64,000 nt of DNA from Heteronotia binoei. Taxonomy: Eukaryota. The notes beneath the pieces are model-generated. The model was not told where the DNA came from. It was given only the letters and a program-made list of their open reading frames with translations, and searched no databases. Location: contig NC_083235.1 in assembly GCF_032191835.1 (NCBI RefSeq), forward strand, positions 62,558,001 to 62,622,000, given 5' to 3'. Numbering within the stretch: the first letter of the stretch is position 1; each line of letters opens with the position of its first letter. The position numbers were made by a program, and so were the translations under genes. Below are positions 14,225 to 60,288 of this stretch, piece after piece.

Positions 14225-14407
14225 ATCAGACCCTCAAAGGTCCATCAAAGTCAGTATTGTCTTCTCAGACTGGCAGCGGCTCTCCAGGGTCTCAAGCTGA
14301 GGTTTTTCACACCTCTTTGCCTGGACCCTTTTTTTGGAGATGCCGGGGATTGAACCTGGGACCTTCTGCTTCCCAAGCAGATGCTCTACCACTGAGCCAC
14401 CATCCCT
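14225..14407 (-). mobile_element. tRNA-derived ~210-bp SINE (Squam2-like)
   Basis: Reverse complement of the unit repeated at 59655-60288. Confidence 0.8.
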
Positions 14408-24035: not shown

Positions 24036-24236
24036 TGAAGCTGCCTTATACTGAATCAGACCCTCGGTCCATCAAAGTCAGTATTGTCTTCTCAGACTGG
24101 CAGCGGCTCTCCAGGGTCTCAAGCTGAGGTTTTTCACGCCTACTTGCCTGGACCCTTTTTTGGAGATGCCAGGGATTGAACCTGGGACCTTCTGCTTCCC
24201 AAGCAGATGCTCTACCACTGAGCCACCGTCCCTCCC
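24036..24236 (-). mobile_element. Squam2-like SINE
   Basis: Same family as 59655-60288, reverse strand. Confidence 0.8.
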
Positions 24237-25787: not shown

Positions 25788-26206
25788 CACATGAAGCTGC
25801 CTTATACTGAATCAGACCCTTGGTCCATCAAAGTCAGTATTGTCTTCTCAGACTGGCAGCGGCTCTCCAGGGTCTCAAGCTGAGGTTTCTCACACCTATT
25901 TGCCTGGACCCTTTTTAGTTGGAGATGCCGGGGATTGAACCTGGGACCTTCTGCTTCCCAAGCGGATGCTCTACCACTGAGCCACCGTCCCTCCCCATGA
26001 ACATATGAAGCTGCCTTATACTGAATCAGACCCTTGGTACATCAAAGTCAGTATTGTCTTCTCAGACTGGCAGCGGCTCTCCAGGGTCTCAAGCTGAGGT
26101 TTTTCACACCTATTTGCCTGGACCCTTTTTTTGGAGATGTCAGGGATTGAACCTGGGACCTTCTGCTTCCCAAGCAGATGCTCTACCACTGAGCCACCAT
26201 CCCTCC
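25788..26206 (-). mobile_element. Head-to-tail dimer of Squam2-like SINE
   Basis: Two full units joined at 25996/25997 (ctcccc|atgaacatatg). Confidence 0.85.
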
Positions 26207-27883: not shown

Positions 27884-28560
<677 letters not shown>

Positions 28561-29428: not shown

Positions 29429-29582
29429 AACATAGCAGTAAAACAGATTGTGAAAGCTGAGCCTTTTACCTGAAAATGAAAGAAGAAAACTACTGCTGCT
29501 TAGTTGAGGCAGCCCTGTCTGATGCTAAAGAGACTTTAGTGAAGTCTGCAGCTATAGCTTATGAGACAGCTCAGGAAATCAG
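29429..29582 (+). pseudogene. Duplicated fragment of the 14-3-3 pseudogene (copy of 33797-33950) in DCXR intron 2
   Basis: 154-bp ungapped match with 6 mismatches by eye; shares the same nonsense codon (GAA AGC TGA). Confidence 0.93.
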
Positions 29583-29682
29583 CTCAGGAAATCCAGCCTA
29601 GAAATAGCAGCTCTCCAGCAGCCCTGGCCTCACTCAATGCACAGCAGCCAAGAAGGTCAGAGCGCCTGCTCCAGCTGCAACG

Positions 29683-29723
29683 CCACTGAGGATGTTCTCC
29701 GCAGCCGAGAACGAAACCTCGGG
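29683..29723 (+). ncRNA. Degenerate hammerhead motif, first copy
   Basis: Core and helix II intact, but GAAACCUC-GGG replaces GAAACGUC-UGG, so the helix III palindrome and the helix I closing pair are lost. Confidence 0.55.
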
Positions 29724-30140
29724 AAGAAAAACTTTCTCCAGTAGAACATGGCACTTGAGCCCGAAAGATTCTACAAACCCTAATGATGTTACCAGCCGTG
29801 AAAACCTGAAAAGAAAGGAAGGTTTGGAAAATTCTTTTGAGATTTCAGGGTGGAATAGGGTTGCCAGGTCCAACTCAGGAAATATCTGGAGACTTTGAGG
29901 GTGGAGCCAGGAGACTTTGGGGGTGGAGCCAGGAACAAGATTGTTACCATTTGGTGTTCTGGCCATCACATTTAAAGAGACTCTGCTCCTTACAAATACC
30001 TTCCCTTCACCTTAAATAATGAAGGATAGGGGTACCTTCTTTTGGGTCTCATAGAACTGGACCTCCTGGTCCAATATTTTTGAAACTTGCGGGGGGGAGG
30101 GGAGGGCGGTTTGAGGAGAGCGCCTGCTCCGGCTGCAACG

Positions 30141-30181
30141 CCACTGAGGATGTTCTCCGCAGCCGAGAACGAAACGTCTGG
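30141..30181 (+). ncRNA. Minimal type I hammerhead ribozyme motif (PLE type), intact copy
   Basis: CCA-CUGAGGA-U-GUUCUC-CGCAGCC-GAGAAC-GAAA-CGUC-UGG. It has the core CUGANGA/GAAA, a perfect 6-bp helix II, a palindromic ACGU helix III and a 3-bp helix I (CCA/UGG); predicted cleavage after C30178 (GUC). Confidence 0.8.
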
Positions 30182-30619
30182 AAGAAAAACTTTCTCCAGT
30201 AGAACACGGCACTTGAGCCCGAAAGATTCTACAAACCCTAACGATGTTACCAGCCGTGAAAACCTGAAATCTTTGATAAAGAAAGAAAGGTTTGGAAAAT
30301 TCTTTTGAGATTTCAGGGTGGAATAGAGTTGCCAGGTCCAACTCAAGAAATATCTGGAGACTTTGAGGGTGGAGCCAGGAGACTTTGGGGGTGGAGCCAG
30401 GAGACTTTGGGGGTGGAGCCAGGAACAAGATTGTGACCATTTGGTGTTCTGGCCATCACATTTAAAGAGACTGCGCTCCTTATAAATACCTTCCCTTCAC
30501 CTTAAATAATGAAGGATGGGGGTACCTTCTTTTGGGGCTCATAGAACTGGACCTCCTGGTCCAATATTTTTGAAACTTGGGGGGGGGGGTTGAGGAGAGC
30601 GCCTGCTCCAGCTGCAACG

Positions 30620-30660
30620 CCCCTGAGGATGTTCTCCGCAGCCGAGAACGAAACGTCTGG
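30620..30660 (+). ncRNA. Minimal type I hammerhead motif, third copy (core intact, helix I closing pair mismatched)
   Basis: CCC-CUGAGGA-U-GUUCUC...GAGAAC-GAAA-CGUC-UGG; predicted cleavage after C30657. Confidence 0.7.
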
Positions 30661-30718
30661 AAGGAAAACTTTCTCCAGTAGAACACGGCACTTGAGCCCG
30701 AAAGATTCTACAAACCCT

Positions 30719-30780
30719 AATCAGTAATTATTGCATGGAATTTACTAATCCTTTGGCTGGGGCCCTGGATTACACTATGA
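30719..30780 (+). pseudogene. Continuation of the duplicated 14-3-3 fragment (copy of 33945-34006)
   Basis: aatcagtaattattgc...ggattacactatga, 3 mismatches; picks up where 29429-29582 stops, with aatcag present at both ends of the intervening insert. Confidence 0.9.
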
Positions 30781-30901: not shown

Positions 30902-30999
30902 CTCTTCCTGCAGGCAGTCGAGGTCCGCCTGGGTCCGGCTCAGCGCCACCACCTGTGCCCCGGCCCGGCTCAAGGCTGCAGCCACAGCTCGGCCGATCC
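30902..30999 (-). CDS. DCXR: DCXR exon 2 (IGRAVAAALSRAGAQVVALSRTQADLDCLQEE)
   Basis: ttgcag| acceptor, |gtacag donor, 98 bp. Confidence 0.95.
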
Positions 31000-31078
31000 C
31001 TGCAAAGGCAAGAGGAAGGAAGCGCGTGAAGGGGGCGTCCAGGCCCTTCGTCCCACCGTGCAGAGCCCCGTCCAATAC

Positions 31079-31406: not shown

Positions 31407-31986
31407 TAGGGTTGCCAAGTCCAATTCAAGAAATATCTGGGGACTTTGGGGGTGGAGCCAGGAAACTTTGGGGGTGGAGCCAGGAAACTTTGGGGGTGGA
31501 GCCAGGAAACTTTGGGAGTGGAGCCAGGAAACTTTGGGGGGTGGAGCCAAGATCAAGGCTGTGACAAGCATAACTGAACTCCAAAGGGAGTTCTGGCCAT
31601 CACATTTAAAGGGAGGGCACACCTTTTCAATGCCTTCCTTCCATAGGAAATAATGAAGGATAGGGGCACCTTCTTTTGGGGCTCATAGAATTGGACCCCC
31701 TGGTCCAATCTTTTTAAAACTTGGGGGTTATTTTGGGGAGAGGCACTAGATGCTATACTGAAAATTTGCTGCCTCTACCCCAAAAAACAGCCCCTCCCCC
31801 CAGAGCCCCCAGATACCCACAGATCAATTCTCCATGATTTTCTATGGGACTAAATCTCCATAGGGAATAACAGAGTTCCCAGCAGACATTTCCCTTCCCT
31901 CCCCCCGCTTTCTGATGACTCTGAAGCGGGGGGAGGGTCTCCAACCCCGGGGATCCCCTGCCCCCACCTGGGGATTGGCAACCCTA
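31407..31986. mobile_element. hAT MITE with TAGGGTTGCC TIRs just upstream of DCXR
   Basis: Exact 8-bp TSD tgttgcca (31399-31406 and 31987-31994); about five internal 20-bp repeats. Confidence 0.88.
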
Positions 31987-32129: not shown

Positions 32130-32530
32130 ATTGGCTTCATACCCCACCCTTCGCTCGGAGTCTCAGAGCAGTTTACAATCTCCTTTCCCTTCCCCTCCCC
32201 ACAACAGATATCTGTAAGGTTGGTGGGGCTGAGAGAGCTCTTTCAAGAACTGCTCTTGAGAGAACTGTTCTGCTGAAAGCTTGTGGCTGATCCAAGGTCA
32301 CACCAGCAGCTGCATGTGGAGTGGGGAATCAAACATTTTCATTTCATTTTATTTGATTTACAGACATCTGTAAGGTAGGTGGGGCTGAGAGAGCTCTTTC
32401 AAGAACTGCTCTTGAGAGAACTGTTCTGCTGAAAGCTTGTGGCTGATCCAAGGTCACACCAGCAGCTGCATGTGGAGCGGGGAATCAAACCCTGTTCTCC
32501 AGATTAGAGTCTATGCATTTAACCGCTACT
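32130..32530 (-). mobile_element. Squam3-like SINE with a ~130-bp internal direct duplication
   Basis: acaga(t/c)atctgtaagg...ggggaatcaaac at 32204 and 32360. Confidence 0.7.
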
Positions 32531-33030: not shown

Positions 33031-33479
33031 TCATTAGTGATGTCTGCTGCCAGAGATGAAACTTAAATGCCTGAGCTGTACTGTTTGTCTTCCACCCTTC
33101 ACCTTCCTCTTTCCCCCTTTCACCCCTCAAAGTAGAAGATGGAAGGTACCACTCAGTCTACTTTCTTACCAGTATACAGTACCAGCTTGTAACAGCTTAC
33201 TTGATGATCCCATAAACATAATTCTCTTAACCCACCGTGGATGGGATGACCCAGCGTAATGGGGTTTCTTATCTGGTTTGGTATTTTTTTACTGGCGTGT
33301 ATGATATTTTGCATGGCTGGAATGGAATAGGTTGGCTCTTCTACGATATTCCAGAACTTTCCAATAACATTCCATAACTTTCCTGTTCCTGTGGCAATAC
33401 TTGTTACCTACAACAGTCAGTATGAACCTTCCTCTGACCCATACAGGCCAGTCTGCAATCCTCGGTCTCTCCCTCTCAG

Positions 33480-34208
33480 TGCTGAGTTGCAAGCAGCTGG
33501 TGCAGGGAGAACAGCTGGCGGAACAATGTGGCAGATACACAGATACGGCTGCTGCCATGAAGCAGCTTGTGGTGGCAAGCAAGGATCCATTAACCCACTC
33601 AGAAAGGTCCTTGCTCTCTGAAGCCTATACATTCCTAATATGAGATTGCAGTGCCTCTTGCCATCAGCTAAGGCACTCTGGAACAGAGTGCTGGAAAACA
33701 GAAAGAGCAAGCCTGAGCCTATTGTGAGATCATTGAGGAGGAGCTGGAAGTTGACCGCTGGGAGAGTCTTAAGACTGTTAGACAATGCCCTATTGGAACA
33801 TAGCAGTGAGACAGATTATGAAAGCTGAGCCTTTTACCTGAAAATGAAAGAAGAAAACTACTGCTGCTTAGTTGAGGTAGCCCTGTCTGCTGCTAAAGAG
33901 ACTTTAGTGAAGTCTGCAGCTATAGCCTATGAGACAGCTCAGGAAATCAGTAATTATTGCATGGAATTTACTAATCCTTTAGCTCGGACCCTGGATTACA
34001 CTATGAGGCTGTCAACAACCCTCAACAGAGACAACTAGACACGCAAGGACTGCCTCCGCTAAAGCCATCGCTGCCCTGGAAAATTTCAGTCTAGAATACT
34101 ACAAGGAACCCACAATTATTATGTAGCACCTAAGGGGCATTATGCAGGGCACCAGTGACCCACCAACCACAGCAGGAGGAGAGTAGCGGGGAAGAGTTTG
34201 AAGACTAA
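33480..34208 (+). pseudogene. Decayed 14-3-3 gene, gamma/eta-like (YWHAG/YWHAH clade), coding region uninterrupted by introns
   Basis: Conceptual translation across frameshifts: KQLVQGEQLAEQCGRYTDTAAAMK...SERSLLSEAY; LLDNALLEHSSETDYES*AFYLKMK (gamma: [25 protein letters not shown]); ARTASAKAIAALENFSLEYYKEPTIIM*HLR; QQEESSGEEFED*. It has several in-frame stops, frameshifts and a deletion in the LALNYSVFYYE segment. Confidence 0.88.
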
Positions 34209-59654: not shown

Positions 59655-60288
59655 GGGGAGGGACAGTGGCTCAGTGGTAGAGCATCTGCTTGGGAAGCAG
59701 AGGGTCCCAGGTTCAATCCCCGGCATCTCCAAAAAAGGGTCCAGGCAAATAGGTGTGAAAATCCTCAGCTTGAGACCCTGGAGAGCCGCTGCCAGTCTGA
59801 GAAGACAATACTGACTTTGATGGACCAAGTGTCTGATTCAGTATAAGGCAGCTTCATATGTTCATGGGGAGGGACAGTGGCTCAGTGGTAGAGCATCTGC
59901 TTGGGAAGCAGAAGGTCCCAGGTTCAATCCCTGGCATCTCCAAAAAAAGGGTCCAGGCAAATAGGTGTGAAAAACCTCAGCTTGAGACCCTGGAGAGCCG
60001 CTGCCAGTCTGAGAAGACAATACTGACTTTGATGGACCCAGGGTCTGATTCAGTATAAGGCAGCTTCATATGTTCATGGGGAGGGATGGTGGCTCAGTGG
60101 TAGAGCATCTGCTTGGGAAGCAGAAGGTCCCAGGTTCAATCCCCGGCATCTCCAAAAAAGGGTCCAAGCAAATAGGTGTGAAAATCCTCAGCTTGAGACC
60201 CTGGAGAGCCGCTGCCAGTCTGAGAAGACAATACTGACTTTGATGGACCGAGTGTCTGATTCAGTATAAGGCAGCTTCATATGTTCAT
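59655..60288 (+). mobile_element. Head-to-tail trimer of Squam2-like SINE (211/212/211 bp)
   Basis: Units start at 59655, 59866 and 60078, each with a tRNA-like head (gtggctcagtggtagag...ggttcaatccc) and a catatgttcat end. Confidence 0.9.

Follow-up and report, generated by a model that had tools for sequence, protein, structure and literature searches.

A retrozyme-like hammerhead array in intron 2 of DCXR in Heteronotia binoei is best explained as a single chimeric Penelope-like insertion

Introduction

Insertions of Penelope-like elements (PLEs) are marked by heavy 5' truncation, partial tandem copies, adjacent inverted truncated copies and an optional tail of 30-40 nt (Craig et al. 2021, PMC8557442). 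Minimal hammerhead ribozymes in these elements were described in 2014, with mention of reptiles (Cervera & de la Pena, PMC4209133). PAc, a Poseidon-clade PLE of Anolis carolinensis, carries a hammerhead that cleaves only with the PLE protein; the ribozyme is dispensable for insertion in vitro, RNA-seq shows no read ends at its cut site, and the tail of the element has been traced to two internal reverse-transcription start sites (Frangieh et al. 2024, PMC11167929). Non-LTR retrozymes, which are thought to be derived from the terminal regions of PLEs, were found in four of five sampled reptiles (Li et al. 2026 preprint, bioRxiv 10.64898/2026.07.22.740005).

Here we describe a tandem array of hammerhead motifs in a 64,000-nucleotide stretch of the Heteronotia binoei genome (the window, to which all coordinates refer). 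An earlier note on this DNA had regarded the array as a possible mobile retrozyme and knew of no earlier account of such an element; given the layout of PAc (PMC11167929), the minimal hammerheads of reptile PLEs (PMC4209133) and the reptile retrozymes (10.64898/2026.07.22.740005), that claim of novelty was too strong. We report the structure of the array, the family from which its hammerheads come, and the events that may have assembled it.

Results

Three minimal hammerhead motifs lie head to tail

A direct-repeat search of the window recovered three tandem, head-to-tail copies, which start at 29659, 30117 and 30596 and are spaced by 458 and 479 nt. A pattern search for CTGAGGA-T-GTTCTC-(7-nt loop)-GAGAAC-GAAA-CGTC found exact matches at 30144-30178 (copy 2) and 30623-30657 (copy 3), and none in 100 dinucleotide shuffles of the window. 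The conserved core and the NUH triplet (CUGAGGA ... GAAA-CGUC) are exact in both of these copies. A bulged U, the unpaired nucleotide between A9 and 10.1, precedes helix II, which opens with a G10.1-C11.1 pair, has six base pairs (GUUCUC/GAGAAC), longer than usual, closed by the 7-nt loop, and forms also in the fold of the whole unit. A helix III hairpin is absent, and copies 2 and 3 have at 15.2-16.2 a palindromic ACGU through which two copies could pair; helix I comprises three base pairs (CCA/UGG) in copy 2 and two in copy 3, where an A-to-C change directly before CTGA (C30622) leaves a mismatch. Cuts are predicted after C30178 in copy 2 and after C30657 in copy 3. Copy 1 (29686-29720) is damaged and reads GAAACCTC then G; its core boxes are kept, but it runs ...ACCUC, with a G-to-C change within the ACGT palindrome, which is lost (ACCU), and a T-to-G change at the first base past the cut site. 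In these features the motifs are minimal type I hammerheads as PLEs carry them, helix III being the palindrome ACGU. The earlier note had described the array in just these terms, and the repeat and pattern searches, together with direct reading of the sequence, bore it out on the number and spacing of the copies, on the condition of each of them (copy 2 intact, copy 3 with an intact core and a helix I mismatch, copy 1 degenerate) and on the class of ribozyme.

When Rfam was searched, no hammerhead family was matched either at the gathering threshold or at E<=10. We reasoned that the motif lacks the helix III hairpin that the models would match, and the null result was not counted against it. 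A search of the 2.63-Gb assembly for the exact motif gave 8,736 occurrences (4,379 + 4,357), and 0 for the reversed control.

The hammerheads come from an abundant Penelope-like family

A segment of about 165 nt around the motif is 97-99% identical to its best other copies in the genome. The termini of the family were mapped on 92 copies spanning the motif: 5' starts varied widely, the nearest lying at -2 and the farthest beyond -431 (counted from CTGA), and 3' ends fell into two classes about 35 nt apart, at +96..+105 (40 of 92) and at +130..+151 (52 of 92). Tail-bearing copies end at ...TCTTTGATA and are followed by unrelated flanks. Head-to-head inverted pairs were present at 7 of 23 sampled sites and numbered about 16 among the first 100 places listed, about half of the sampled motifs being so arranged; no adjacent inverted truncated copy was found at the DCXR array. 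A second hammerhead on the same strand within 1.5 kb was seen at none of 59 sampled family loci.

Helix II begins with the start codon of the element, an ATG at 30150 in copy 2, and the cut site follows 26 nt past this ATG. A scan for open reading frames behind the hammerhead ATG at 59 loci gave a longest frame of 156 aa, which ran into flank, and no full-length element. The first 44 aa of the ORF, compared by phmmer with 1.84 billion proteins, recovered no PLE protein and gave four weak, multi-stretch matches to unrelated proteins with unrelated Pfam domains. Pieces coding for GIY-YIG are dispersed in the genome (645 candidates); 24 of the 150 that were scored passed E<=0.001, all of them over the Pfam cut-off. 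The hammerhead belongs to a young and very abundant PLE, probably of Poseidon type, and the probable tie between this family and an ORF encoding RT and GIY-YIG is drawn from homology with PAc. Next to one PLE piece, a 103-nt satellite was considered as a candidate true retrozyme; it was rejected, as it lacks the hammerhead core and is the continuation of a tRNA-derived SINE.

The array is a single insert in intron 2 of DCXR

DCXR lies on the minus strand of the window. An exon 1 ORF (MERFVGRRALVTGAGKGIGR...) was found at ~31127, exon 2 at 30902-31000 (best PDB match, human L-xylulose reductase 1PR9, E=1e-5) and exon 3, by translation of minus-strand sequence, at ~27900-28020. The positions of exons 2 and 3, which flank the array, place it in intron 2, with the sense of the hammerheads antisense to DCXR; its assignment in the earlier note to a DCXR intron in this orientation was therefore correct.

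The sequence bordering the array on the plus strand is a copied piece of a neighbouring 14-3-3 pseudogene: the left half of the target (29429-29581) is 96% identical to 33797-33950, and the right half (30721-30780) is 95% identical to 33945-34006. The paralogous site itself (33797-34006, plus strand), part of a decayed 14-3-3 pseudogene with 14-3-3-like ORFs, is empty; there the left half runs straight into the right half, as in the state before insertion. Because this paralog is contiguous across the block, the whole of 29582-30720 (1,139 nt) is a single insert, and the span of 29583-30720 given in the earlier note was near base-exact. A target duplication of 3-5 nt, TCA (up to AATCA), is present at both junctions. 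The 5' junction carries 10 nt of filler (29582-29591, plus strand) which repeats target bases 29569-29578; TRF reported a 13-nt repeat of 2.1 copies at 29567-29593. At the other end, the block stops at +97, the canonical PLE 3' terminus of the no-tail class.

The repeated unit joins PLE, spacer and MITE sequence

Within the insert, all components read on the plus strand, in the order filler, PLE piece 1, X, M, PLE piece 2, X, M, PLE piece 3, amounting to 2.3 units. PLE piece 1 (29592-29810), as aligned to longer family copies, extends from -94 relative to CTGA to a tail-bearing 3' end, with a 10-nt deletion, and contains the degenerate hammerhead. PLE piece 2 (30117-30278) extends from -27 to +134, also bears the tail and contains the intact hammerhead, and PLE piece 3 (30596-30720) extends from -27 to the no-tail end at +97, within the +96..+105 class of family 3' ends, and contains the intact core with the helix I mismatch at C30622. 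The tail of each of the first two pieces is followed by spacer X (29811-29855 and 30279-30323), a unique sequence of 45 nt which lies between the PLE tail and the terminus of a MITE. Identity between the two full units is 96.4%, with 16 substitutions over 447 aligned sites; in addition, three indels (10, 22 and 11 nt) set them apart.

The remainder of each unit, M (29856-30116 and 30324-30595), comes from a hAT-like MITE, of which it holds the ~260-275 nt at the 5' end, beginning from the terminal inverted repeat. A full copy of 580 nt at 31407-31986 has terminal inverted repeats TAGGGTTGCCA and an 8-bp target duplication TGTTGCCA, features that identify the source of M as a hAT-like MITE. Unit positions ~143-421 (30324-30599 in the window) are 82-84% identical to more than 5,500 genomic candidates and belong to an older and very abundant repeat, and contigs of other genomes begin at 29856 and 30324, the two starts of M. 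Both junctions from M to the following PLE piece are identical and fall at a GAG microhomology. X and M are both absent from the empty site and hence came in with the insert; they were not resident.

The composite unit is found only here. A 32-mer from the core of X, allowing <=3 mismatches, occurs twice in the whole genome, both times in the array; a search of the genome for the PLE-X-MITE junction gave no other locus, matches to the MITE-to-PLE junction elsewhere ran through the MITE half only, and a search of the 2.63-Gb assembly with the whole 479-nt unit gave no further copy. A PLE 3' piece, a unique 45-nt spacer and the first ~275 nt of a MITE are combined in this one-off 479-nt chimera. 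We rejected the idea that X continues the PLE ORF, as other tail-bearing copies diverge after the shared terminus given above and X is found nowhere else. The translation of X faintly resembles PAc, probably by chance.

Origin of the array

We consider it probable that the block 29582-30720 is a single chimeric PLE retro-insertion which became, or arrived as, a partial tandem, and that it is retrozyme-like in shape only. In the scheme that we favour, the PLE reverse transcriptase would have started at its normal internal no-tail site, copied back to -27 and, at the GAG microhomology, switched to a read-through transcript of another PLE copy adjoining a MITE; copying would have halted at -94, giving PLE-X-M-PLE. 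The insert landed in the copied scrap of 14-3-3 pseudogene within the second intron of DCXR. The middle unit could then have been added, during insertion or shortly afterwards, by a single unequal exchange of the two direct PLE pieces of 125 nt. The reach of piece 1 to -94, past the -27 junction, fits a two-template cDNA followed by unequal exchange and does not fit pure rolling-circle copying. No source locus with a PLE tail, X and MITE in succession was found in the assembly, so the second template is hypothetical; this gap is left unexplained by unequal exchange and by single-event models alike.

A less likely course, to which we nevertheless give some weight, is that one retrotransposition produced all 2.3 units of the array, the reverse transcriptase either copying a concatemeric or circular chimeric RNA or making repeated jumps from the 5' end of one 479-nt RNA to the 3' end of the next, and finishing on normal PLE RNA. 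PLE insertions are typically partial tandems, circular templates have been proposed for them (PMC4209133), and the proper PLE ends and the one small target duplication are as such an event would leave them. Variant sites and haplotypes were compared with respect to in-place duplication versus a single-event multimer; the sites are few and form a star. PLE piece 2 has, at the four sites examined that are polymorphic in the family, the haplotype G,C,A,C of a subfamily that already exists, and at the remaining sites where the three copies differ it has the family majority. Private changes in the three PLE pieces number 0, 4 and 5 (9 in ~500 nt), with piece 2 unmutated, a star-like pattern that gives no sign of a duplication younger than the insertion. 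The units differ from one another by 3.6%, roughly double the divergence that each PLE piece shows, and therefore look as old as the insertion, which also suits a single event. All three pieces share a minority C at +20, which 18 of 95 family copies have; this mildly favours one template over two. Against a single event, the 5'-most piece reaches past the M/-27 junction, which would demand an extra homologous switch; a circle made by hammerheads requires a prior locus with two hammerheads, and none exists elsewhere; and the 479-nt monomer RNA is not unusually structured (MFE -154.7 kcal/mol; shuffles averaged -146.5 kcal/mol, which gives z = -1.25, and 12 of 100 were at least as stable), so that the 479-nt unit is not predicted to be a compact, highly paired RNA.

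The earlier note had proposed that copies 2 and 3 form a dimeric hammerhead which frees a 479-nt RNA, to be circularised and mobilised by PLE reverse transcriptase. The tandem layout, with two intact cores exactly 479 nt apart, invites this proposal; retrozymes are now thought to be PLE-derived and do occur in reptiles (10.64898/2026.07.22.740005), and sequence of the PLE family is present in RNA libraries of related organisms. We nonetheless judge a functional non-LTR retrozyme to be very improbable. Nowhere else in the 2.63-Gb assembly does the unit occur, which speaks against a mobilised element; the two units have drifted apart, and copy 1 is dead. In fold predictions of the isolated hammerhead segment, helices I and II (-8.1 kcal/mol) lose to a local alternative (MFE -12.8 kcal/mol), and the helix III duplex between copies has only 4 bp (-3.1 kcal/mol). 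The PAc ribozyme needs its protein, is not needed when insertion is assayed in vitro and has yielded no read ends where it should cut, and eight of nine tested Xenopus retrozyme dimers failed to cleave in vitro. Cutting by the hammerheads of the array would require a transcript of the plus strand (antisense to DCXR) and, by analogy with PAc, probably the presence of PLE protein as well. As for transcription of the array, the four public sequencing runs examined bear on the repeat families only, as contigs from other organisms, with zero depth on the unique flanks; the runs gave one weak and unreliable joint, from 30279 to 30328 (side 25), and no read-end data. The raw-read run placed 0 reads on the stretch, and no run was listed when the unique junction was used as the query.

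Least credible is a plain local tandem duplication of resident intron DNA, an old PLE fragment beside a MITE, which would suit a unit unique to the DCXR locus and the microhomology at the repeat junction but is contradicted by an empty-site paralog that has no X or MITE half and is contiguous across the block, by the passage of piece 3 into 14-3-3-derived target and not into the rest of the MITE, and by the stop of the array exactly at the canonical PLE 3' terminus. The earlier note had coupled a unit confined to this locus with just such a duplication; the genome search upheld the confinement, and the empty-site paralog told against duplication of resident host DNA. We also rejected a model in which two PLEs inserted independently on either side of a resident spacer and MITE and an unequal crossover came afterwards, on the grounds that the empty site is without X and M and that the sequence after piece 3 is not MITE.

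Discussion

The array has the architecture of a retrozyme, three type I hammerheads head to tail, and it lacks the family: with the composite unit at the DCXR locus alone, nothing points to a family of retrozymes that propagates. As part of the chimeric retro-insertion that we favour, the array is probably a dead-end by-product and not a member of a spreading family. Consequences for the host are likely to be slight for an antisense intronic insertion. The layout of hammerhead and start codon, the tail and the presence of retrozymes in reptiles were all known already, and the one unusual aspect is the foreign cargo between hammerheads.

The locus serves as a worked example of how a hammerhead array in a vertebrate intron may be explained by the tail signature of PLEs, internal starts of reverse transcription, 5' truncation and template switching. 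Events of this sort can bring two hammerheads and foreign cargo together in one unit, and it is from such material that non-LTR retrozymes are believed to arise. If the single event by concatemeric or circular copying were the true course, the array would be a naturally 'bar-coded' snapshot of the birth of a retrozyme-like unit, a step inferred from phylogeny only in the preprint on reptile retrozymes (10.64898/2026.07.22.740005). With about 8,700 near-identical motifs, the genome of Heteronotia binoei should in addition be a good system for the study of a recently active, hammerhead-bearing PLE.

Among studied elements, PAc comes closest to the family in the DCXR array. In both, the hammerhead lies over the junction of pLTR and ORF, the start codon opens helix II and the cut falls 26 nt past the ATG. 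The ORF of PAc starts (PMC11167929, supplement) with ATG, 18 nt and then GAAACGTC, as it does here, with a helix II that is different and still pairs; ETSG and SPKD occur in both N-termini, as compared by eye and not by formal alignment, and both families have two classes of 3' end about 35 nt apart. Because the two differ in helix II and in most of the sequence around it, the family of the array is a separate one in another host genome, and the PLE pieces of the array, unlike PAc, are short 5'-truncated ends without the body of the ORF.

The metazoan non-LTR retrozymes (Cervera & de la Pena 2020, PMC7229834; 10.64898/2026.07.22.740005) resemble the array in being head-to-tail repeats of a few hundred nt with type I hammerheads that depend on a partner. 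They differ in that retrozymes are multi-copy families, with arrays and monomers genome-wide and abundant circular RNAs, whereas the DCXR unit exists once. More than half of that unit, again unlike retrozymes, is captured spacer and MITE fragment. In this respect the array is similar to LINE-1 chimeric retrocopies and 3' transductions, in which unrelated or flanking RNA is joined through read-through and template switching of the reverse transcriptase at microhomology; LINE-1, however, uses a different class of reverse transcriptase and endonuclease, and PLEs start internally on their RNA, so that copying of downstream flank is less obvious. The typical partial-tandem and inverted insertions of PLEs with pseudo-LTRs (Craig et al. 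2021, PMC8557442) are matched by the array in their 5'-truncated upstream copy, repeated terminal region, optional tail and complex junctions; where those insertions normally hold the element's own ORF between the terminal repeats, the array holds foreign DNA.

Genomic abundance of the PLE family and components of the array

The hammerhead-bearing Penelope-like element (PLE) family is very young and abundant, with 8,736 exact-pattern hammerhead motifs across the whole genome and identities of 97-99% for its top copies. Head-to-head inverted pairs account for roughly half of the sampled motifs, with 60-380 nt between the two motif starts, and at least two subfamily haplotypes were distinguished by positions +20 (T/C), +41 (G/A) and +98 (T/C) relative to the hammerhead CTGA.

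The MITE that supplied its 5' half to the array is also present as a complete 580-nt copy at window positions 31407-31986, which carries terminal inverted repeats (TAGGGTTGCCA), is flanked by an 8-bp target duplication (TGTTGCCA) and is hAT-like; an internal 22-nt tandem repeat differs among MITE copies, from 2 to approximately 5 units. In RNA-library run X1, from a related organism, a single contig joined a PLE tail end to a MITE start (30279/30328) without spacer X, one side spanning just 25 nt; this joint may be due to chance, or to a similar PLE-beside-MITE arrangement elsewhere.

The target of the PLE insertion is the copy, in DCXR intron 2, of a 212-nt stretch of a decayed 14-3-3 pseudogene (33400-34040, plus strand; ORF fragments include ...AAIAYETAQEIS... 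and ...SERSLLSEAY...).

Further tandem repeats and probable SINE heads

A tandem repeat of 156-nt period occupies 32204-32490 (1.8 copies, 97% matches). Elsewhere, at sampled PLE locus L033 (1955-3090) and its near-duplicate L036, a 103-nt satellite of approximately 11 copies, lacking a hammerhead core, lies approximately 290 nt downstream from a PLE end piece and prolongs the body of a tRNA-derived SINE.

Seven tRNA-like matches exceeded the Rfam threshold in the window, four on the minus strand (14335-14406, 24161-24232, 25920-25991 and 26132-26203) and three on the plus strand (59660-59731, 59871-59942 and 60083-60154). All seven are nearly identical, and each has three mispaired pairs in the acceptor stem. 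Most probably these matches represent the head region of a SINE of tRNA origin and not genuine tRNA genes.
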